A DNA stretch of 64,000 nucleotides from Hyaloraphidium curvatum SAG 235-1 (Eukaryota; Fungi; Monoblepharomycota), in NCBI GenBank assembly GCA_025558095.1, contig JAIVFI010000004.1, positions 186,001-250,000 on the forward strand. The letters run 5' to 3'. Positions 4,519 through 30,627 of the stretch are shown piece by piece. The translations under genes and the position numbers were made by a program. How positions within the stretch are numbered: position 1 is the stretch's first letter; each line of letters starts with the position of its first letter. Below the pieces are notes generated by a model, which searched no databases, was not told the DNA's origin, and saw only the letters and a list, made by a program, of their open reading frames with translations.

Positions 4519-7500
4519 ATGTCTTCCGACGCGCGCGGAACATCTCTCTTTACCGATGACGCGCGCGTCGCCGGTCCTGGGTCTGCGGAACGCGTCTCGG
4601 GCGTCTTTGAACGCGTCGCCGCCCTCTCGGCCGCGAATCCCGGCGCGGTCGCAGTTCGCTTCCCTGGAACTCGGAATGGGCCTCGGGCGCGAGATTTGAG
4701 CTATTTGGAGCTGGTGGAAGCGGTGAATCGGTTGGTGGAGAGTCTGAAGGAGGGAGGGGTTGGTGTCGCGAGACTCCGGCTGCAATCCTTCGATATCTGA
4801 CGCGGCTTCCGCCGTGCCAGGTCTCTGAAGGTTCGCAGGTGCACGTTTTTCTGTCTCCGGGGATCGATGTGGTGGTCCTTATCTTGGCGTGAGGTCTACT
4901 CCGTGGCGACGACTAGTCGCAATGCTGAAGAACCTCGATCTTCGCAGAATCTGGGAAGCAGGGGCAACTTATGTGCCGCTGCCGATGGATTCCCGTTCCT
5001 ATGCCGTCTCGATCCTGAAGGCAAGCCAGGGATTCGTCATCTCGGACGGTGGCGGCGCCGACGTGAGAATTGTGTTGTCGCTCGCGGTTCGGTTCCGCTC
5101 ACTTTTCTTGCAGTCAGTGCGTGCTGCAGGCCTCACACTCGACTTGAAGACTATGTCGGACACAGGACTTCTCTTGGGAACCCTCTCTGGCGGCCAAGTT
5201 GCTGTGGCGACCGACGAGCGCATCGCTTACGTGATCCGCACCTCCGGCACGACGTCTAGAACGGGCTTTGGAACCGCTGTGCGCGTACCGCATTCCTCCT
5301 TCTTGACGAATCTCTGGTCCATACGCGATCGCCTCTTTTCTCCCGGCGGGGCAGCTATGACCCCGATCATTCCGCTCGTTTCTCCGCTCACGTTCGATCC
5401 TTCGCTCGTGGAGCTCTTTCTTCCCCTCGTTCTCGGTGGCACCGTCGTGATCCTGCCCCGGGAGGACCTCATCGCCCCGGACCGGCTCTTCCCGCACCTG
5501 GCGCGGTGCACCGCTATCTTCTGCACCCCGTCGCTCTTTCGACGGCTTTCTCACGAGCACCGCGCCGAAATCTTGGCGGGAGCTACGGACGTGCGAATGT
5601 TCGTGCTCGGCGGCGAGCCGTTCCCGCAGCAGCTCTTCGGATCGCACGCCGTCGACGTGTACAACATCTACGGAACCACCGAATGCAGCGTCTGGGCGAC
5701 GATTTGGAAGGTGGAACCCAGCGAGGAAGCGCTGTTGGGCGATCCGCTGGGGCCAACGGAGCTGGAGCTGCAGCCCATCGAGGTCGAGGGACGAGACGGA
5801 GAGCAACTGTTTGAACTCTACCTTGGCGGACAAGCACGGATTACCTACGTGGACGGCGATCCTGCGGGACAACCGCCCCTCCTGAGGCCGACAGGAGACG
5901 TCGTGCGCAAGGTCCGCGGAGGGCTGGCGTACGTCGGACGGCGGGACGGTGATGCCCAGGTCAAGATTGAAGGGCGGCGTATCGATCTTAGCCAGGTTTC
6001 ACATGCGATCCGGGAGTTGGGGGTCGACTGCGAGTGAGCCGATCGGACATCTTTCCCACGACTCGGAATCTCACGCATGTTGCATCAGGGTCGTCGATCT
6101 GCACGTGAACGGCAGCTCGGAGCTCGCCGCATTCTTGCTTCCGCCCCGCATGAACGAAGTCGCAGCTCTCCACCGATCTTTGGCCCTCAAGCTCCCCGCG
6201 CATGCCCTCCCTTCTTCGTATTTCCTGCTAGAGGAGCTTCCGGCGACAGCTAACGGCAAGGCAAGAGTGACTGCGCTTACCGACGCGATCGATAATGACG
6301 AGTTTGCTTCTCTAGGTTGACCACACGGAACTCAGGAAGCTTGCCAAATCTCTCGAGCCTGTTCTTCCTCTTCCAGCGTTGCACGTGCAAAGCTGGAGCC
6401 TACCCGACGTGCTTCGAAGCCTCATTTCTCTTTACGGAAGCATGCTACAAAAGCAAGGATATGCGGATCAGCACCCTTTGGGAAACATCTACTTCCTGGC
6501 GGAAGGCGGTGACAGCCTATCTGCCTCCTTTCTCGTCGAGCAAGTCTTGAGGGCCCCGGGCAGCCGTCAAGAGCAGAGGTCGCTCGAGCGCCAAAAGTGA
6601 CATTTTCTTCGTGCGCCTCGACCGCTCACGTACTGACTGCCCCTCAACCAGGCTCTTGGACAAAGTCTTACATGGAACCGCCGCCGACGTTGCACGGCTC
6701 GTCATCGACCTTCGCACAGAGCTTTCCGGAAACGGGGAATCGATTGAAGTGCACGAGCCGTCTGAATCTGCTCCACGTTCGAGTGCCGAAGCGTCTGCCG
6801 CGAACTCCATCATTGGGAAGCGCAAACGGATCGAATATGTGGTTGTGCTCGAGCGAGCCTCGGCACGAGCAGCGGACGCCCAGGCATCGACGTCTCTGTC
6901 GTCTGTTGCGGCTTGGATCGAACTTTGGGACCTTGATTTGAAGGCGTGCGTAGACGCTTCGCCACTGGTTGTACGTCAGGGAAGCAGTGGGACAATCTTT
7001 ATCGGTTCTCACGCGGGGATCTTCTCGGCCGTCGCTCTGGACGGCAGTGTGCGATGGACAGCTCAGCTCGGTGGCAGGATCGAGTCCACAGCCTGTTTGG
7101 TGGGGGATCTAGTCTGCGTCGGTGGGTCTTCGCGCGCGGATTGCGTGTCGCGCAGCTGATGACAACCAGGGTGCTACGATGGCCGTGTCTATTTCCTCTC
7201 TGCCGAATCTGGCACCCTTTTTTGGACGTTCGAAACGGGAGATCTGGTCAAGTGCTCGCCCTGCCCCGTCGGAGACGATGTAGCCATTGGTTCGCACGAT
7301 CACTTCTTTTACCGCCTCTCACCGAACTCGAAGTCAGTGGTGTGGAAGCTGGACCTCGGAGCGGGGATCTTTGCTCGGCCCGGGTGCATTGTGGACGGAG
7401 ATGGACAGAGGATCATTGTTGGCACGCTCGGCGGCTTTGTTTTTGCCATTGATGCCTCCAGTGGAGCAAAGCTGTGGAGCGTTGATATGGGGAAGCCCAT

Positions 7501-7999
7501 TTTCGCAGCCCCGGCGTTCAGGTCGGGCGGCGGCGTTTACGTTGGCACTGTTGGCGGCACTCTTTCGGCCTTGGATGCGGCAGGGTCAATGCTTTGGAAT
7601 TACTCCGCAGGAGCTCCCATTTTCTCGACTCCTGTCGTGCACTCCCCCTCGGGCACAATCGTATTTGGCTCTCATGCCAAGCGGATAACGGCTCTATCTC
7701 CTGGTGGCAGAGAAGTCTGGAGCTTTTCTACCTACTCTCAAGTCTATGCGAGCGTGTCGATCTTGGGGAAGACCGTCTTCGCTGCGGATACGGACGCCCA
7801 CGTGTTTCTTTTGGACATTGAAGACGGCTCAGTCCAAGACTTCTTTGTCGGGTGCTCCGCGGAAGTGTATTCTAGCCCCGTCCCCTTGGATGCGGCAACG
7901 ATCGTACTCGCAGGCCGCGACGACCGGCTACACCTCTTCCACCGCGCCGCTACAAACTCCACGGATCCTCCCAGATTCCAAGCGCCTGGTTCCACTTGA
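4519..7999 (+). CDS. AASDH: AASDH/ACSF4-like NRPS-like enzyme (adenylation + carrier + PQQ-type beta-propeller)
   Basis: A-domain motifs YVIRTSGTT, LTFDPS, NIYGTTE, TGD, GRRD..QVKIEGRRIDL and TANGK/VD (GC-AG intron 6261-6315). Carrier motif GGDSL. C-terminal 'ACVDASP', 'IFIGSH' and repeated W-containing PQQ blades. Several short introns; start and first exons approximate. Confidence 0.85.
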
Positions 8000-9778
8000 G
8001 CCCCAAGCCGCGCTTCGCCATCTCGTAGGCGCCATATCCAACGACGACCGTCGGCACCGCTTTGGCCAGCGTGAAACCTCCGCCTCGGAAGAAGCCAATC
8101 AGCCCATTACGGCGATATATGGAGGCGATGCAGTCAGCTGTGGACCTGTATGAGTACGGATGGAGAGGCGTGTCTTGCGCCATCATGCGCGCTCGCACGA
8201 GAAGCAGAGGGTAGAAGCACAGCTCGGAGACCGTGGCTGCGACTGCCGCGAAGGAAAGGACGAGATGGATCGGCGGTGGCGACTAGTATTAGACGCAATC
8301 AGCTGTCTACTTCGGGCGACGCAACCTGACCGAGCAAAACCTACGTAGCCGCTGGGTCCGGGCGGATTCTTGTCGAACCAGCGTTTCTCGAAACTGTCGT
8401 AAAGCGCCTCCGACATGCTCATGAAAGGAACGGTGGAGAACAGCGTGGCCGTGGTTCCTTTCCAGAAGCCTCGCAGTCCCTGCGTCTGCAGAATTCGCGC
8501 CGCAGATTGCGCCATCGTCAGGGAAGTTCGGCCCGGCAGAGTCGGTGCAGGCGCTCGTGCTTTGCTCCTCCCTTTGTCCGTCAATGCCTTGAGGTCCGTA
8601 TCCGCATCCGCGATCCGTTCCACGCCCGACATCATGCGCGTTCGAATGTTGTCCAGAGGCTGCAAAAGTACGGCAGCGACAGCGGTGCTGGCTGATGCGG
8701 CGGCGAACATTCCGCGGCGAGATATGTCGTGCGGTTCGTCGGGGCGGCCCTCGTACTCAGCGACTTTGAACCGAAAGTAGCCCAGAGTCAACACTCGGCA
8801 GGAAGCTTCGAGCGGGAGCTTCAGAAGGTTGATGGCCGTCCCGCGCCATAAGCCTCGGATGAGTCCACCATCCTTGGCGATCTGCTTGATGGACACAGCC
8901 AGCTTGGAGCCCGAGTGCGGCCTCGCGTAGATCCGAGTTCCCCGTCGCGCCCTATGCGGTGCCATCGGCATCCCCCCAAGTTGGTAGAACAGACGGATGC
9001 GGTCCAAAGGAGCAGTCACAATGCGAGCCACGGCGGCCGAGATTCCGGTGGCCAGGACGATGCCTGATTGCAGTTCCTCCGCCCGTGCCGCCTCCGGCGG
9101 TAGCACAATCAAATCCAGTCCAAAGACAGAGTGCCCGAACCTGTGTGTATCGGCATAGTATTCGTAGAGGCCACCAAGCGACGTATGCTCGTCCGGGTTG
9201 AGGAGAAAAATATCGCGGAACGCCGGGAAAGACAGCTTGCCGTCGATAGAGTGGGCTTCCAGGCCATCGATAAACCTGTCTTGCTCGTGGAGCGACAGCT
9301 CCAGCTCGTCCGCCAGGGCAGCTTTGAGCTCCTCCCGGTCCAACCGCCCGTCGCCGGACGTATCCAGGGTCTGGAATAGCGACCACAGTTCAAGCTCTCT
9401 TTGCAGGACGAAGTCCTGGAACTGCTGGAAGCTTATCTGTCCCTCCTGCGCGTGGCACTCCTGCAGCAGCTCGTGCGACAGTTTGTCAGCGGCCGTCTTG
9501 TCCCGGAGTTGGGCCTTGCGCTCCCGCCGCCGCGTCCGCACATGAGCCTCGCCCGGCGAGTCTGCATCCTCCGGCGGTTCATCAGCAATCCGCTGGAAGT
9601 ACGATTGGAGCTCCTGGGCATCGATGAACCCGCTGCCGTCCTTGTCGAGCGCGTCAAAGAGCGCTTTCACGCGTCGCCTGTTGAATCGAAGCGACCCGGG
9701 AGGCAGGGGCAGCACGTCCCGGTTCTCATCGACGGCGCCAGGAAGCGGCCTCGGAGCCCGCGAATCGAAAACGACCAT
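7950..9778 (-). CDS. EF-hand mitochondrial carrier (Sal1/SCaMC-like, divergent)
   Basis: EF hands DKDGSGFIDAQEL and DTSGDGRLDREEL. Carrier signatures PLDRIRLFYQ, PLDNIRTRM and P..LVRARM; GLWRG/GFWKG/GFFRG. Intron near 8290-8347. Confidence 0.85.
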
Positions 9779-9969
9779 TTCAGGATTCCTCGGCCCGCAG
9801 TTGTCCGCGCCTTCAGGGACGGACGAACTAATGGCGCGGCCTTGGCCGAAGGTGTCAGCAGCCCCCTCGGTCCGCGTCGCCCGACTTCGAACCCCTGGAA
9901 AACCGAGCACTTCTTGCTCAATAACTCCTCTAAATCACAATCCTGCATACAGACATAGAGATCAATCCA

Positions 9970-12900
9970 TCAGTACGCCCACAGCTTCACGCCGCGGAAG
10001 TAGCCCCGCTGCAACCGCGGCGCCGCAAAGTCCTCGGTCCGCCCGCCCTGGAAAGTCTCAAAGCGGATGCCGGCAAACACCGAGGCTTTTTCTGTCCGGA
10101 GCACCAGCTTCCGGAAGTCGATTGCCGGCCGCTCGGGAAACTCGGCACCGTCCGCGGCCGCCCACAGGACGAGCACGCCGTCTCGCACGGGCCGCCCGTC
10201 CACGTCGAACGAGTTGAGCTGCACGTACTGCCGCAGCCGGTTCCAACGCCCGGGCTGCAGCGCGAAGGAGCCTCGGCCGAGGCTGTCTCCGTATGCGTCC
10301 CCGCAAAGGCTCCAAGGCGGCAAGTAGCAGTACTCGGGATCCTGCCACCGGGGGCCGCGCATGTAGACCTCGGCCTGGCCATTTCGTCGCCACTGAGGGC
10401 CGGCAAAATCGATGGTCAGATATCCAGTTGCGAGGTGACACCCGTGATCGACCCACCATGAACCGAGTCGAGAAGCATTCAGGCCCGTCGTGCTTCTTGG
10501 CACACTCCTCTGGCCCACCCAGCAGACCCGGCAGTCTCCCACCGCCGAACCAGTCGAAGTCAGGCGCGAAATAAACCTCGTACTCAAGCATGATGCCCCG
10601 AGCTCCGCGCACGTCAATCGGTCTCGCCAAGAAAGACGTGCCACCTCCCGACACCAGGTCCCACGAGCCCCTCGGGTACCGAACCGCCATGACCAAATCG
10701 GACGTCTGCTTCGTCGGATCTGTAGCAAGCTCGCGGTTGAACGAGTTGACGGAACGCGTGACGTTCCAGCGCTCCAGGTCCAGCCGCTCCCCGAATCCGA
10801 AACGCGCAAGCAGCCTCGGGGTCCATCGTCGGAAGCCCCACGACGCCTTTGGCGCCCCCGAAACGATGGCGCCGCCGGCGGAGTCCTCGCTCGGGACCGT
10901 CGGGTCCTCGCCCGTCGGTGTTGGCCGCTCCGGCTCCCGTTCCGCACTGCTGTCCAGCCGACGCAACGCAGCAACCCGTGCTCCGTCCCGCTTGAAGAAA
11001 CCCGGAGGAGCCATGCGTCGGAGAAGGGTGGCAGTGGTCGTCGGCGGAGGCGCGACCGTGATCTTGGACGCGATTTCCGTCAACGGGTTTCCGGGCTACA
11101 AATCGGCATGAGCAACTTGGAGACCGATCCGAGCTGCCGTGCGACACGTACCGTAGTCGTAGTTGTGGAGAGCGTTGTGGTTTTGGTCGTTGTTTTGGTC
11201 GTTGTGGTAGTCTGATCGAAACACGCGGCGTCAGATGCGGGCACTTCCGATTTCGAACCGAGGAATTCTCACCGTCGTGGTCTTGGTGGTTGTCTGAGAA
11301 GAGGGTAAGGAAGCAAGCATGAGTTTCGGAAACAAGGGGAGAAAGCCATGACGAAGCAAAGGCCTACCGGAGTCGGGGTGGTGGTTTTGGTCTGCAAGCA
11401 AGTCAGCCTCAGGTAAACGGACGAGCGTGCGAGAACCTACCGTAGTCGTTGTTGTCGTTGTTTTCGTCGTGGTCGGCGTCGTCGTTGTAGTAGTCTGTTC
11501 GCGCCGGCATGTTCGAAGAGTCAACGCACGCAACGGCAGCAAGCAACATCCGAAACGCACCGTTGTGGTCGTCTTGACGGTGGTTGTGGTCTTCGTCGTA
11601 GGGCTCGGCGTCGTCTGCGGGAATCACGGATGAGCGTTCGACGCCAAGACGAAAGTGGCAAGAGTACCGTTGTCGTGGGCACCGTCGTCTGCAGGTTAGG
11701 CGTGGTCAGCAAAGCACAAAAGACGTTCAGGAAAACGAAGGACACACCTTTGTGGTAGGAGACAGCGTCGTCGTTGTCTGAAGATCACCGAACGAAGATC
11801 AGATCCCGCAGCGGACTCGTGAGGGGCAAACCCACCGTCGCGGCTTTAGTTGTGGTCTTCACCGACGTCGATGAGGTGTCCAGGGTCGGCGTCAGCGTGT
11901 TCGTGTCGGTCGCCGACGTGGTCTTGCCCGTGGCCGTTCCCGTCGCCGTCCCCGACTTGGTTGTCGTCCCGCTCTTGGTCGTTCCTGTCGTCGTACGCCC
12001 GGTCCTGGTCGTCGTCGTCCGCGAAAACGAAATGGTCGAGGTGCTCCGCGACGTGGCCGTCAGGGTCGTGGTTGTGTTCAGCGGCGCCGTCGGGTAGCCC
12101 TTGTTGAGCTGGGTGCCCGCGATCACACCGCCGATCAGGCCCAGGAGCGCAAGCAGGCCGAGCACGCCGAGCAGGATCATCGCCAGCTGCCGCAGCCACT
12201 TGCGCCGCTCAGCCTCCTCGTCCTTGAGCGGCTCGGTCATGAGGGGAGCTTCCCGGACCCCGAAGTTGGGATCGGGCACCGCCGGCGGGGGCATGCTCCC
12301 CGGTCCCATCGGGGCGATCGGAGGCAGGCCGACCGGGATGGCGTCCACCGTCTCCTCATCGTCGTCCGTGTACTCAGATTCGTCGTCGGTGTACTCCGAC
12401 TCGTCCTCGTCCGTGTACTCGTCCTCCTCCTCGCCTTTGTTGAAGCTGACGATCCTGCGGGCGCGGATCAGATGCGTTCACAGCCACTGGAAGCAAGTGA
12501 CCAACCTCTGGAGATCGTACGTCTGCGTCGCGGCATCGTATCCCGCCAGGATGTCGTCCATCTCCTCCTCCACCTGCGGCATCGGCAGCGGGTCCGGCGC
12601 CGGCGGCAACGGGGCCAGCGGCGGGGGTACGTACGGCGGCTCGCCGCCGCCATCCATGGCCCCGATCCCAGCCACAGCCATCGCCGTCACAGCGTTTCCC
12701 GTCCAGTCTGCCGGCGGCTCCGGCGACCCGGCCTTGCTGCCGGGGAGCGGTGACGACGTGGGCGGGAGCGGCGGCGCGCCGAGGATCGACTCGGGATCGT
12801 AACCGACCCAGCTCGCCTCGGGTCCCCCGGGTCCGGGGAAGTTGAGCTCGCTGCCTTGGGCGTACCCGGCGAGCAGAGACTCGGGCCCCTGCGTCGCCTG

Positions 12901-14915
12901 CGGCCCGGCGCTGGTCGCGGCATACCCGCCAAGCACAGATTCCTCCGCTCCGCCGCCGCCGTAGTCGCCAACGAGCGCGCTGAAGGTCACCCCGGAGCCG
13001 ACAGTATCCCCCCTCTGCAGATCCGCACCAGGTCCACCCTCGGCGCCCGCGGGATCGTAGTCCCCAGGCGAGTTCCAAACCGCGCCCTGCCCGTCCGCAA
13101 GGCCCGAAGCGACAGCCGACGGGGCCAGCGAGGCAGCCGACGCCCGGTTGTTTTCCGACGGCGTGATGCCCAGGGCGCGCAGCTCAATGTCCGTCACGGC
13201 GCGGGAGGGCGAGGTGTTGGCGAGCTCCACGGGACGGAGGTCCTGTGGCGTGGGTGCGCGCCGCGAGGGCACGGGCGACGGCGCCAGCGCCGGCGCGGGA
13301 TCCGCCGGGCCGGCCGAGGTGCTCGCGGCTGCCGCAGCCGCAGCAGCCGCAGTCGCCTCGTCGTCCTCGGCCTTCTTCTTCTCCTTCTCCGTCGACGGCA
13401 TAATCCCCATGGCCACCAGCTTGGCCCGCATCCGCTCGATTTCGGCCTGGGTCTGCTCGCTGCGCTTGCCGGCGCGAGGGTTGGCGGGTTCCTTGCCCTT
13501 GCCCTCGGTCGGAGAGTCCTTTGGCGGCGGGGTGGGTGCGACCGAAGGCGGTGCAGGGGAGGGAGCCGCTGGGGAGAGTCCGCCGGGAGAGGGTTCGGCA
13601 GGCGAGCCGTCGCGGTCATGGGCCGATGCGGAAGCGGCAGATGCGGCGACGGAAGCAGCGGCCGCGGCCGTCAACGCTTCCGGCTGGATGGAAGGGGAGA
13701 CGCCCGAGCCCATCTGCGAAGCCGAGGGCGACTTGGGCGCCGAGGCGGCGGCCGAAGGCACAGGCGACCCCGGAGGGGCGTAGACAGGCGACGGGAAGGC
13801 CGCCGCCTTCTCCTCCACATCCCTCACCGACGCCGGCACCGAAGGCTTGGCGCTGCGCCCCGAACTCGAAGCGACCGACGGGGCCGGTGAGGGAGATTTG
13901 GCCGCCGTAGGGGTGCGCGGTGGCTCCGGGCTCGGCGCCGGCGATGGGGGAACAACTGCGACCTCCGGGCTCTTGGCAATCGGGGGAGGAGGTGCGGCGG
14001 AAAGAGAGGAAGCCGGCGTCGCGGGTTGTGAAACGTGAGAAGGAGAGGGCACCGCGGCCGGCGCCAGGGCGGGGGAAGTCGGGGCAGAGATCGCCGGTTG
14101 GGGCGAAGGCCGTTGAGGGGAGGGCGGTTGAGGCGACAGCGGTTGAGGCGATGGCGGTTGAGGCGAGGGAATGCTCCTTGCCGGAGCTGAGGCAGGCACC
14201 ATTTCCACCACGGGCACCGGTTCCGGCGTCTTTGCCGGCACAGAAGGTACCGGCGATGCCGCCGACGGCGGCGGTACGCCCATGTTGGTCCCCGTCATGG
14301 TGCTTTCCGCGTACCCAGCGCGCGGGTCGACCTCGCTCATCGCCGACAGCCGGTCAAACACGTCCGACTCGTCGCCCTGCGCGGCCGGCGGCGGCACGTA
14401 CACCGTCTTTGGCGCCTCGAGCGACCGCAGCAGCTTCTCCTCCGTGCTCAGCGGCTCTGCTGCCGGCGACGGCGCACCCGAGACGGGGCGGCTCTGCGAC
14501 GGCGACGGTGCGCCCGAGCCAGGGCGGGTCTGCGCCGGCGACAGGCCGCCGGGGTACGACGACCGCGAGTTGCGGTTCATCGTGCCGCCGGTCTCCTTCG
14601 CCAGCTGCTGGTAGTGCGGGCGGCAGAAGAACAGTCCGTTGAGCGTGGCATAGTTGCCCAGCTTCAGCGCCGTCCCGCACTCTGTGCATTTCCAGCAGCT
14701 GCAAAAGCGAGTTCCAAAAGGCAGATAGGAGAACCGTGGCAGGGTGGTCGGTTAGGGAGGAAAGGGCGCGGCGGCGCAACCGGGCGGCGGGCGCGGCGGT
14801 TAGAGCGGGCCATCGGGCGGCGCGGCGCCACGCACAGCTTGTGGAACGTCTTGTCGTTGACGGTGATGCTCTCCGCGGGGTACGCCTTGCGGCCGCACGT
14901 CTCGCAGGTCGCCAT
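9970..14915 (-). CDS. LIM domain - Pro-rich - acidic - TM - Thr-rich stalk - PL14 polysaccharide lyase-like protein (~1405 aa, 12 exons)
   Basis: Exons 14836-14915, 12506-14698, 11836-12454, 11748-11777, 11668-11688, 11561-11614, 11441-11494, 11368-11391, 11273-11293, 11152-11211, 10457-11095 and 9970-10392. All introns are GT-AG and the frame stays open (4218 nt). LIM pattern CxxC..H..CxxCxxC..CxxH. TM ILLGVLGLLALLGLIGGVIAG. PL14-like motifs GGRLPGL.GG, FSTRFMWR..GQAEVY, GDSLGRG.F, ETFQGG. Confidence 0.8.
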
Positions 14916-14993
14916 CGCCTGCTGAGGCCCTCAGGGCGCGGGTCTCTATCCTCCGTCGCCGCCTCGGCCCGGACACCCCGCGCCGTGCGGCGC

Positions 14994-15001
14994 TATAAAT
15001 A
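14994..15001. promoter_or_regulatory. TATA-like element upstream of the LIM-PL14 gene
   Basis: TATAAATA (TATTTATA on minus) embedded in very GC-rich DNA, ~80 nt upstream of the ATG at 14915. Confidence 0.35.
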
Positions 15002-15195
15002 GGCGGCCTAAGCCGCGGGGCACTCCGCCCGGCCCACGGACTGGCGCGGAGGCGTGAGTGGTCCCACTTGTTTACGCCCCGGGCCGGCGAGGGACGACAC
15101 CGCCGCAGCGCTTTCATCACCGCCAGTCATCGCCGCCCATCCACGCATTTACCCGCCGTCCTTGTGGCATACACAGTCCGCTATGAGACAACAGC

Positions 15196-16112
15196 CTACA
15201 TTTCTGGCCTGGCCCGTCGCCGCGGGCTGCGCACCAGCGTGTCCGCCGCGATCTTCCTCGCAAGACCCTCGATCTCGACGTCCTCCTCGGCCGGTTCCGG
15301 GCTGGCCGAAATCCCAAGCCGATTCAAATCCCCACTTTCGTCGCGCAGGATGTGGTCGAACGCCGTCCGTAGACCTGCGACGATCCGCTCGTCGCCGACG
15401 TGGGCAGACAGCATCGCGGCCTTCTGGTCCGCGGCCCGGGCGCCCTCGCCGGCTTCGGGGAGCAAATAGAAGTGCAGGAGCTCACAGAGCTTGTGCCTTG
15501 TGAAAGGTCCGACGGATTCGTTGAAGTTGAGCAGGGGAACAGAGAGAAGCACAGTCAATGCTTGTCGAGAAGGCCGTCCAGCAGGCCCCAACCTCACGTC
15601 TCTCCTCTTGCCTGCCTCCTTCACGTGTCTGGAAACCACTGCCAAACCGCCCAGCTCCTCAAACACCTTGGAGCCCGCCCGCATGGGTCAGCTCCGGTCC
15701 AACTCCATGCACACCTGGGCAACGGCCCAAAACCCACCCTGCACCCATCGGGCCAAACAACGACGCCCTGCAACACGTCCGCCGCCGCCAGCACCTCCTC
15801 CGGCTCCCCCTCCAGCAGCCCCAGCAAGCCCCCGACCCAGCCCCTGCTCTCCCCCAACCGCGCCCGGCACCGGTCCGAAAGCAGCCCGGCGCCCTCGCCG
15901 CACTCCACCGCCGCGATCAGTTCCGTGCCGTGTTCGGGGTCCGGGCCCGAAAGCGCCGATTCCAGGGCCTCGCAGAGGGGTTCGACGGCCGACGGGTCGG
16001 AGGGGAGCGCGGCGCCCGGGGACGCGAGCACAGAGCGCAGGCGCGACCAGCGCCCGGGAGCGGGAGCCAGGAGCTCACGGAGGCGGGAGGGGGCGATTTG
16101 CGCGGCAGACAT
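15196..16112 (-). CDS. Cdc14 SIN component-like (S. pombe cdc14 family) ARM-like protein
   Basis: Motifs DVLQGVV, VFEELGGL and KLCELLHFYLLPE...QKAAMLSAHV resemble the SIN Cdc14 family. At least one short intron near 15670-15737. Confidence 0.5.
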
Positions 16113-29639: not shown

Positions 29640-30374
29640 CTACATCGCCTCCAGCACGTGGATGCCGTCTTTGTCAATCATCTTCACCAGGAACTCCCCC
29701 TGGTTGATCACCAGCCTCGTGCGCAGCTCGTGGATGCACTTCTTCAGCACATCCTTCGCCTCGTCGAGGTTCATGTCCGGCTTCCAGTGGCGGTCGAATA
29801 CCGAGGAGCAGAAGTATGCCGAGTAGCCGTGCGCGCCGAACGGCACCTTCACCATGGCGCCCAGGTAATCCATCCAGAAGAGGGCCGGTTCCGAGGTCTT
29901 CGGGTCCACGCCGCCGAGGAGCAGGTTCACCTGGTACGGGTTCTGGACGCGGGGCGGGTGTGAGCACGCGTGCAACGATGGGGGCGCTCCCGACGCGTCC
30001 CGGGCCACGCGAACCGCAGATCGCCGCACACTGCGAGGCGTGCACGCGTTTCCCGGGCACGGCGGCGCCCGCCGCGGGAGATCACCCACCCTGCTCCGCA
30101 GGCTGTCCGCCAGCTCGCGCCGCACAAAGTGCGCGAGCCCCGACGGCGACAGCGCGATGCCGTTGCGGATCTCGTACAGCGAGATGTTGCGCTGGATGTA
30201 CTCGGCGAAGTTGACGGCGTCGCCGGCCTCGCCGGCGAACGACATGACCGTGTGCCGGTTGAGGTCGCGCGTCTTGTCCTCGCCGCGCTTCATGACGACG
30301 ATGCTCCGCGCCGCGTTCGTGTCCGCCGCGATGAGCGTAAAGTCCTTTCCGCAGAGCCCGAGGAGCGCCTCCAT
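29640..30374 (-). CDS. PRE1: 20S proteasome subunit beta type-2 (beta4)
   Basis: MEALLGLCGKDF..., GEAGDAVNFAEYIQRN, PYQVNLLLGG, AHGY. One in-frame intron ~29944-30089. Confidence 0.95.
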   Translation of the reverse strand: MEALLGLCGKDFTLIAADTNAARSIVVMKRGEDKTRDLNRHTVMSFAGEAGDAVNFAEYIQRNISLYEIRNGIALSPSGLAHFVRRELADSLRSRVGDLPRRAPPCPGNACTPRSVRRSAVRVARDASGAPPSLHACSHPPRVQNPYQVNLLLGGVDPKTSEPALFWMDYLGAMVKVPFGAHGYSAYFCSSVFDRHWKPDMNLDEAKDVLKKCIHELRTRLVINQGEFLVKMIDKDGIHVLEAM

Positions 30375-30627
30375 CTCGGCGGCGTGGGGGCAGCAGGGTG
30401 TGGAACGAACGCGTCCTCGCAACGCAACCGGTCACCACCATGCCGGAGATCGGCCAACTTGCCAACCCACTGCCCGCGATCTGCCCAAGAATCAATCGTT
30501 GAAACAGCAATAGAATCGGTGGTATCAACCCATACACTCCGTGAGCCATTAATCTAGCTACAATACGCATCAGACCGAACGCCGCGGCCGGTCCCGCCGG
30601 ACCGCCGCCCTCGCCGTCCAGGGCCGG

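Follow-up and report, generated by a model that had tools for sequence, protein, structure and literature searches.

A single spliced gene on the minus strand of a 64,000-nucleotide stretch of the Hyaloraphidium curvatum SAG 235-1 genome (GenBank assembly GCA_025558095.1, contig JAIVFI010000004.1, positions 186,001 to 250,000; hereafter the window, to which all coordinates refer unless another contig is named) encodes a 1405-residue protein that joins an N-terminal LIM domain to a C-terminal domain of the polysaccharide lyase family PL14 through a long disordered region, a predicted transmembrane helix and a Thr-rich stalk. We find this architecture to be genuine and conserved, although none of the public protein models that we found shows it, and the residue aligned with the catalytic lysine of PL14 and PL36 lyases is an arginine (Arg1239). 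That the protein forms a link between actin and the cell wall is a reasonable hypothesis, and the functional story built on these sequence features is, in our assessment, partly supported.

Gene structure and transcript

The gene (14915-9970) was rebuilt from donor and acceptor contexts on the minus strand between 15100 and 9900, with the reading frame checked by script. The model (ATG at 14915, stop codon at 9972-9970) comprises 12 exons and 11 introns of 49-137 nt, all of them GT..AG, and yields a coding sequence of 4218 nt without internal stops. These numbers are identical to those of an earlier sequence-only reading of the window, which had proposed 11 canonical introns and an open 4218-nt frame for what, in the unspliced track of open reading frames, looks like a set of separate pieces in different frames. 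Exon 1 (14915-14836) holds the start codon and the first half of the LIM domain, which is interrupted by intron 1 (14835-14699, 137 nt). The second LIM half (14698-14614) forms the 5' end of exon 2 (14698-12506), and the remainder of this exon (14613-12506) encodes ~700 residues of Pro/Ala/Ser-rich disorder, predicted to be cytosolic, in which several islands are conserved in an ortholog. Intron 2 (12505-12455, 51 nt) contains an in-frame TGA. Exon 3 (12454-11836) encodes an acidic block and the transmembrane segment, and its 3' part begins the Thr-rich stalk (12111-11152), which continues over seven mini-exons (11777-11748, 11688-11668, 11614-11561, 11494-11441, 11391-11368, 11293-11273 and 11211-11152). 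The PL14-like domain (10873-9973) is shared between exon 11 (11095-10457, first half, from about residue 1127) and exon 12 (10392-9970, second half), with intron 11 (10456-10393) inside it. The mini-exons are 21-60 nt long, of phase 0-0, and encode almost purely Thr, Lys and Pro; the frame would survive the skipping or duplication of any one of them. No duplication of an exon-intron unit was detected in the stalk by Tandem Repeats Finder.

In the one public sequencing run that contains this DNA, listed tentatively as RNA and compared with the window over 9700-15300, a single minus-strand contig of 4419 nt (15074-9928) was found to cover the gene, made up of a 159-nt 5' untranslated region (15074-14916), the 4218-nt coding sequence and a 42-nt 3' untranslated region (9969-9928). 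Its 11 joints fall exactly at the predicted intron borders (CT..AC on the plus strand); since this corresponds to GT..AG in the sense of the gene, the run consists of RNA or, at the least, includes spliced RNA. All seven mini-exons are present in this contig, and intron 2 is removed from it, as the sequence-only reading had anticipated; no other contig covers this intron. An RNA contig is not proof of a single molecule and remains compatible with a minor internal start, and its depth (441 vs 96 and 89 for the contigs of the two neighbors) was not taken as a measure of expression.

Orthologs and conservation of the architecture

We found just one public model for the locus, KAI9031146.1, a 218-residue hypothetical protein of H. 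curvatum that is 100% identical to it, starts at Met1188, is spliced over intron 11 and covers the PL14 tail alone; for the N-terminal part no public model of 400-1277 residues was found. Relatives were collected by searching exhaustively with HMMER, the query being the N-terminal half of PL14. Besides KAI9031146.1, this search yielded an ortholog of 1169 residues (P0002), 50% identical in the PL14 half, which has both LIM and PL14. Its gene lies on a genomic contig of 33.7 kb (L008) from the run SRR23967301, where an uninterrupted open reading frame (6001-9510) extends from MALCETCGRKAYPAES through the disorder, the acidic block, the transmembrane segment and the Thr stalk to ECFSTRYM, followed by an intron at the position of intron 11 and the second half of the PL14 domain. 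The contig has no introns at the sites of introns 1 and 2, and at the latter the frame reads through (QTYDLNRVVSF), so that QTYDLNRVVSFDDGE is colinear with the spliced QTYDLQR-IVSFNKGE of the present gene. A third ortholog (L009), found on a 1.8-kb JGI metagenome contig, comprises the juxtamembrane region, the transmembrane segment, the stalk and PL14. It has an extra intron in the PL14 domain after GGGTS (about 1215-1275) that is present neither here nor in L008. As judged from these comparisons, intron positions in the LIM-PL14 gene turn over quickly, and introns 1 and 2 are found only here.

The identity to P0002 is distributed over the entire length of the protein: 73% in the LIM domain, 83% in the island NPRAGKRSEQTQAEIERMRAKLVAMGI, 68% in the region of the intron 2 junction and the acidic block, 58% in the transmembrane segment with the residues ahead of it (836-885), and 50% and 62% in the two halves of PL14. 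The Pro/Ser/Ala stretches between the islands cannot be aligned. The occurrence of conserved islands along the full length argues that the whole architecture is under selection. Additional homology searches with the whole of P0002, with its residues 630-815 and with exon 2 returned P0002 only (low-complexity words probably swamped the lists), scans of metagenomes with ortholog-specific motifs gave no matches, and a search of the ESM Atlas for look-alikes gave no usable match. A proteasome subunit gene, 87% identical between the two genomes, occurs in the window (about 30081-30377, minus strand) and on L008 (316-1183); its distance from the LIM-PL14 gene is ~15 kb here vs 5 kb (upstream) in L008, a case of loose synteny between moderately diverged genomes.

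An alternative view of the locus is that of two adjacent genes, one for the LIM/Pro-rich part and another for the transmembrane/PL14 part, fused by contig assembly or by rare read-through. Besides the limits of any RNA contig as evidence for single molecules, this view could draw on the TGA of intron 2, which would end an unspliced first protein at 12478, on a Met located 20 residues ahead of the transmembrane segment, and on the public model being confined to the PL14 tail. It is contradicted by the removal of intron 2 in the only covering contig, by a frame that is both open and conserved across the junction, and by the ortholog, which has neither an intron nor a stop there. Moreover, the RNA contigs of the flanking genes end at 9839 and begin at 15134 (89 and 60 bp away) and stay separate, from which it follows that the assembly is not gluing genes at this locus. 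The two-gene reading is largely refuted and in our estimation very improbable. The RNA contig, together with an ortholog running from LIM to PL14 in an uninterrupted frame, bears out the earlier claim of one gene, and the loose synteny and the conserved islands along the protein speak for it as well.

LIM and PL14 domains

Pfam searches were run exon by exon (cut-offs of 22.9 bits for PF00412 and 27 bits for PF21294). The LIM profile PF00412 matched exon 1 over positions 1-24 with 15 bits and exon 2 over positions 26-56 with 18 bits, so that each half alone scores under the cut-off while the two cover adjoining profile positions; the unsplit LIM of P0002 scores 36.1 bits. The spliced domain has all eight zinc ligands (Cys4, Cys7 and His25 from exon 1; Cys28, Cys31, Cys34, Cys52 and His55 from exon 2) in the spacing C-x2-C-x17-H-x2-C-x2-C-x2-C-x17-C-x2-H, which conforms to the canonical LIM pattern C-x2-C-x16-23-H-x2-C-x2-C-x2-C-x16-21-C-x2-C/H/D. 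The PL14 profile PF21294 matched exon 11 over positions 2-93 (70.6 bits) and exon 12 over positions 94-214 (79.7 bits), and in the match to the structure of AkAly30 exon 11 stops at chain residue 142 and exon 12 begins at 143. The rejoining of the profile halves at adjoining positions in both domains provides independent support for introns 1 and 11. The single N-terminal LIM and the PL14-like C-terminal domain of the sequence-only reading were thus both recovered by profile.

In a PDB search with the unsplit LIM of the ortholog, the best matches were LIMD2 (E value of 4e-13), CRP1, EPLIN and MICAL (E values to 7e-9); MLP and CRIP also came before the paxillin, PINCH and LMO types. These matches agree with the kinship to actin-associated LIMs suggested before and point to the cytoskeleton-associated single-LIM class, with actin binding as a putative property. 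Direct actin binding is characteristic of some members of this class (CRPs, plant LIMs), not of every such LIM. LIMD2, CRP1, EPLIN (LIMA1) and MICAL, which are similar to the protein under study as the closest sequence matches for its LIM, are all soluble and have no membrane anchor or carbohydrate-active domain, unlike the LIM-PL14 protein.

The C-terminal domain is, by both sequence profiles and a structure model, a true PL14 homolog. The public 218-residue model scores 165 bits against PF21294 (positions 9-214). Its AlphaFold2 model (mean predicted local distance difference test score, pLDDT, of 93.2), which does not include the first ~60 residues of the PL14 domain, gave 5GMT (AkAly30; TM-score of 0.86) and 3GNE/3A0N (vAL-1; 0.77) as the top Foldseek matches, followed by the PL36 enzyme Aly36B, consistent with a beta-jelly-roll. 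A profile of 20 relatives likewise matched AkAly30 (E value of 1e-61), vAL-1 (2e-25) and Aly36B. With AkAly30, vAL-1 and the PL14s of chytrids (Homolaphlyctis, Synchytrium), of which it is a clear homolog, the head of the LIM-PL14 protein shares the GGxLPG motif, CFSxR, the first active-site Tyr and the loop disulfide. On the other hand, the essential Lys is replaced by Arg in this protein, which also has Arg at the position of the second Tyr. The chytrid PL14s are secreted proteins of 250-600 residues, whereas here PL14 forms the C-terminus of a 1405-residue LIM protein of predicted type II topology.

Arginine in the column of the catalytic lysine

In the head motif FDWFGGGRLPG, Arg1239 (codon AGA, 10537-10535) aligns with Lys197 of vAL-1, Lys99 of AkAly30 (whose residue numbers in the structure differ by 12 from those in print, as checked with Cys115, Cys124 and Gly118) and Lys143 of Aly36B. 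According to a review, vAL-1 cannot do without Lys197 and Ser219, and the acid/base of Aly36B is Lys143 (PMC13709232). Mutants of Lys95, the putative counterpart in the abalone enzyme HdAly, are reported to be dead (PMC5082319). The alignment with vAL-1 keeps the spacing K197-22-S219-2-R221-12-Y233-2-Y235, with 22 residues from the Lys column to Ser in both proteins. All three orthologs, including L009, have Arg in the column of Lys197, and they also agree in Ser at Ser219 (Ser1261 here), Arg at Arg221 (Arg1263) and Tyr at Tyr233 (Tyr1275). The column of Tyr235 is occupied by Arg1277 here, by Tyr in L008 and by Asp in L009. Roles of the Tyr pair have reportedly been described (Ogura 2009; Qin 2017), and those of Arg221, Tyr233 and Tyr235 are in keeping with the sequence spacing.

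A motif of the GGxLPG type is borne by 146 of the 150 nearest relatives (representatives at 50% identity), and the catalytic column contains Lys in 144 of these 146, Arg being found only in this protein and P0002. Another alignment has Lys in 19 of 19 others in the column of Arg1239. The disulfide Cys of the active site enclose a loop that has basic character in this protein (KKHDGPE) and acidic character in the two orthologs (SEDDLDSEE and SDEHDSQS). The Lys-to-Arg change at the catalytic centre is clade-specific and conserved, and the neighboring positions are relaxed, with the carboxylate-facing Ser, Arg and Tyr retained. A standard lyase would fit such a pattern less well than a module for binding or an enzyme that is much altered, although inactivity is not thereby proved. 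The earlier suspicion that a domain with GGGRLPG may bind rather than cleave is strengthened by an Arg in the catalytic Lys column that is common to the three orthologs.

A membrane-tethered active lyase, in which Arg1239 replaces Lys and the cytosolic tail only targets or clusters the enzyme, should be considered as another possibility, e.g. for wall remodeling during the formation or release of autospores. The substitution retains the charge, Ser1261, Arg1263, Tyr1275 and the disulfide of the active-site loop are conserved, and the model displays the full PL14 fold (pLDDT of 93). Other PL14 relatives with C-terminal transmembrane or glycosylphosphatidylinositol (GPI)-like anchors are also in line with a tethered enzyme, and, this being the sole PL14 gene in the genome, any PL14-type lyase activity must be its own. 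Such an enzyme would nevertheless have to work without a Lys on which vAL-1 and HdAly reportedly depend, which acts alone as acid/base in the PL36 enzyme Aly36B and which is nearly invariant among the motif-bearing relatives. The second active-site Tyr would have to differ among three orthologs, and the loop between the disulfide Cys to be wholly different from one to another. We regard an active lyase as a possible but rather unlikely explanation.

Predicted cytosolic tail, membrane segment and stalk

A Kyte-Doolittle scan of the whole spliced product (19-residue window, threshold > 1.6) detected one hydrophobic segment only, at residues 848-871 (12186-12115), and no N-terminal hydrophobic stretch or signal peptide. 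The segment is preceded by EAERRKWLRQ and kept in both P0002 and L009. Within 15 residues of the segment there are 5 Lys and Arg on its N-terminal side vs 1 on its C-terminal side. The 10 cysteines of the protein are the 6 zinc ligands of the LIM and 4 residues forming two pairs in the PL14 head. One of these, 1250/1259, occupies the columns of the Cys115-Cys124 disulfide of AkAly30, described together with Gly118 (PMC8618178), and the other, 1287/1295, is near-invariant in the family. A type II (N-in/C-out) topology fits every one of these sequence features, and we infer it from the lack of a signal peptide, the single hydrophobic segment, the basic excess on its N-terminal side and the distribution of Cys.

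On the presumably cytosolic side, the disordered region is composed of 18% Pro, 17% Ala and 13% Ser, and the acidic block EEEDEYTDEDESEYTDDESEYTDDDEE (12438-12337), which is kept in P0002, contains 58% Asp and Glu. The island NPRAGKRSEQTQAEIERMRAKLVAMGI (residues 433-459; 13482-13402, minus strand) is helix-like, lies inside the unalignable disorder and has no Pfam match; it is probably a partner-binding site. A second island conserved in the ortholog, MDDILAGYDAATQTYDLQ, is located at 12561-12508 (minus strand). The disorder also contains five GY[AD] motifs, with the consensus hydrophobic-x-[AG]-G-Y-[AD]-x-x-[ST], at residues 155, 618, 638, 659 and 746 (about 14316, 12927, 12867, 12804 and 12543, minus strand), which occur in the same order in P0002 and matched no known motif class. 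On the opposite side of the membrane segment, the stalk (residues 873-1052) contains 57% Thr. The disorder, the acidic block, the single transmembrane segment with its basic RRKWLR flank and the Thr-rich stalk named in the sequence-only reading were all found in the spliced product.

Rarity of the architecture and genomic context

The PL14 gene is single-copy in the 31.9-Mb genome, and a genome search revealed no paralog of the cytosolic islands. Among the 80 longest of the nearest PL14 representatives, LIM co-occurs with PL14 only in P0002; this set has three other partner domains (chitin-binding, PAN and LRR), each seen a single time. Some PL14 relatives carry C-terminal transmembrane or GPI-like anchors, and the tethering of PL14 is therefore not new. 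The new part is the long, predicted cytosolic N-terminus with a LIM on PL14, a new arrangement of known domains in a lineage that has been little studied. A literature search found no publication combining a LIM domain, a polysaccharide lyase and a transmembrane segment, and neither this search nor the domain scan of relatives gave a case of LIM+PL14 beyond this protein and its ortholog, in agreement with the earlier remark that no described protein of this architecture was known.

The genome contains at least four loci of the UDP-Glc/GDP-Man dehydrogenase family PF00984 (genome contigs C2:205062-205325, C2:600563-600790, C3:731212-731535 and C12:403841-404113), which suggests a substantial capacity for making uronic acid sugar nucleotides. 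The neighbors of the LIM-PL14 gene are unrelated to it and encode an EF-hand mitochondrial carrier of the calcium-regulated SCaMC/Aralar type (8183-9910, minus strand, downstream), a CoA-transferase III and an AMP-binding enzyme. The intergenic spacers (9839-9928 and 15074-15134) measure 89 and 60 bp, the upstream neighbor is transcribed divergently, and the genome is very compact.

Proposed function

The reading that we favor, tentatively and at somewhat less than an even chance, is that of a single-pass type II tether or sensor in the plasma membrane that binds wall polyuronate and is tied to cortical actin partners. Residues 1-847 would constitute its cytosolic part, with the LIM, the motif-bearing disorder and an acidic Ser/Thr/Tyr block at the membrane, and residues 872-1405 its extracellular part, a presumably O-glycosylated stalk of ~180 residues followed by the disulfide-bonded PL14 head. 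The stalk (tens of nm if extended) would push the head into the wall, where it may grip a polyuronate of the wall or matrix, similar to beta-1,4-glucuronan, and cleave it little if at all. Gripping rather than cutting is the most likely role of a head that keeps the Ser, Arg and first Tyr of the uronate-binding cleft but has a variable second Tyr and, in all orthologs, Arg for the essential Lys. The 847-residue tail, with its LIM, polyproline runs, GY[A/D] motifs and casein-kinase-like acidic block, would recruit cortical partners, and the protein would thereby report or fix the position of the wall to partners in the actin cortex that bind LIM and proline motifs. Glucuronan of the fungal wall is the presumed substrate of fungal PL14s (PMC11325530), which, in combination with the PF00984 loci, makes a polyuronate ligand plausible. 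Hyaloraphidium is non-flagellate and crescent-shaped and reproduces by autospores (PMC6899921), which makes the positioning of the wall and the handling of the mother wall plausible contexts for such a protein.

Several points weigh against this reading. Binding, topology and actin association all rest on inference from the sequence, and the existence of a uronic acid polymer in the Hyaloraphidium wall is a presumption. The Lys-to-Arg change is conservative, and Arg acts as a Bronsted base in some other lyase families, so that activity may persist; the kept Ser, Arg and first Tyr would be expected of a working active site too. As to the cytosolic side, a single LIM is insufficient for the strain-sensing actin binding of tandem-LIM proteins, and the actin sites of EPLIN flank its LIM. 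Finally, an extra internal start could conceivably yield a short isoform limited to the transmembrane segment and PL14.

The proposed tether is best compared with the yeast sensors Wsc1 and Mid2, which also have a single transmembrane segment, a Ser/Thr-rich stalk, a carbohydrate-facing head and a non-enzymatic, partner-recruiting tail. However, these are type I proteins with a signal peptide, a WSC head and a short tail that binds Rom2, whereas the LIM-PL14 protein is predicted to be of type II and has a PL14 head and an 847-residue tail with a LIM; there is no sequence kinship. None of the marks of a Wsc/Mid2 sensor (signal peptide, type I orientation, WSC or Mid2 head) was found, and the analogy is functional only. 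Plant class I formins such as AtFH1 offer another parallel as wall-membrane-actin bridges with an extracellular part that anchors them in the wall, one transmembrane segment and a cytosolic module directed at actin, with proline-rich stretches; they too are not homologous to the LIM-PL14 protein. AtFH1 has an FH2 domain and an extensin-like Pro-rich extracellular part, while the LIM-PL14 protein has no FH2, a folded lyase-like domain and, if the predicted topology is correct, the opposite orientation.

The same architecture could serve a receptor for foreign polyuronate (from the wall or mucilage of an alga or another fungus) that signals the presence of a nutrient or a host through its long cytosolic tail instead of monitoring the cell's own wall. 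Relatives of the Hyaloraphidium lineage live among algae. The lifestyle of Hyaloraphidium itself is not established (PMC6899921). The present data do not separate a self from a foreign ligand. A stalk of ~180 residues would, on the other hand, keep the head in or barely beyond the cell's own wall, and the protein has no signaling enzyme domain. We consider such a receptor improbable.

A bolder version of the tether hypothesis would describe the head as a disabled PL14 turned, in this clade of Hyaloraphidium-related fungi, into a polyuronate lectin that a glycosylated, spring-like stalk and the transmembrane helix couple to a LIM and proline-rich tail engaging the actin cortex, and the protein as an integrin- or Wsc-like mechanosensor of independent origin and opposite orientation, as well as the first transmembrane LIM protein. 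This we offer as a speculation that is more probably wrong than right.

Implications

Walled cells need to have the state of the wall tied to the cytoskeleton, and the known solutions to this problem are few: yeasts have the Wsc/Mid2 sensors, whereas plants use wall-associated kinases and class I formins. We know of essentially no wall-cytoskeleton links in early-diverging fungi. The LIM-PL14 protein provides a concrete candidate from the monoblepharid/Hyaloraphidium lineage, in which crescent, autospore-forming cells need precise shaping of the wall. With a public model reduced to a 218-residue tail, architecture surveys of that protein collection would miss the combination of LIM and PL14. 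As for the family, the gene represents a natural experiment on the catalytic lysine of PL14.

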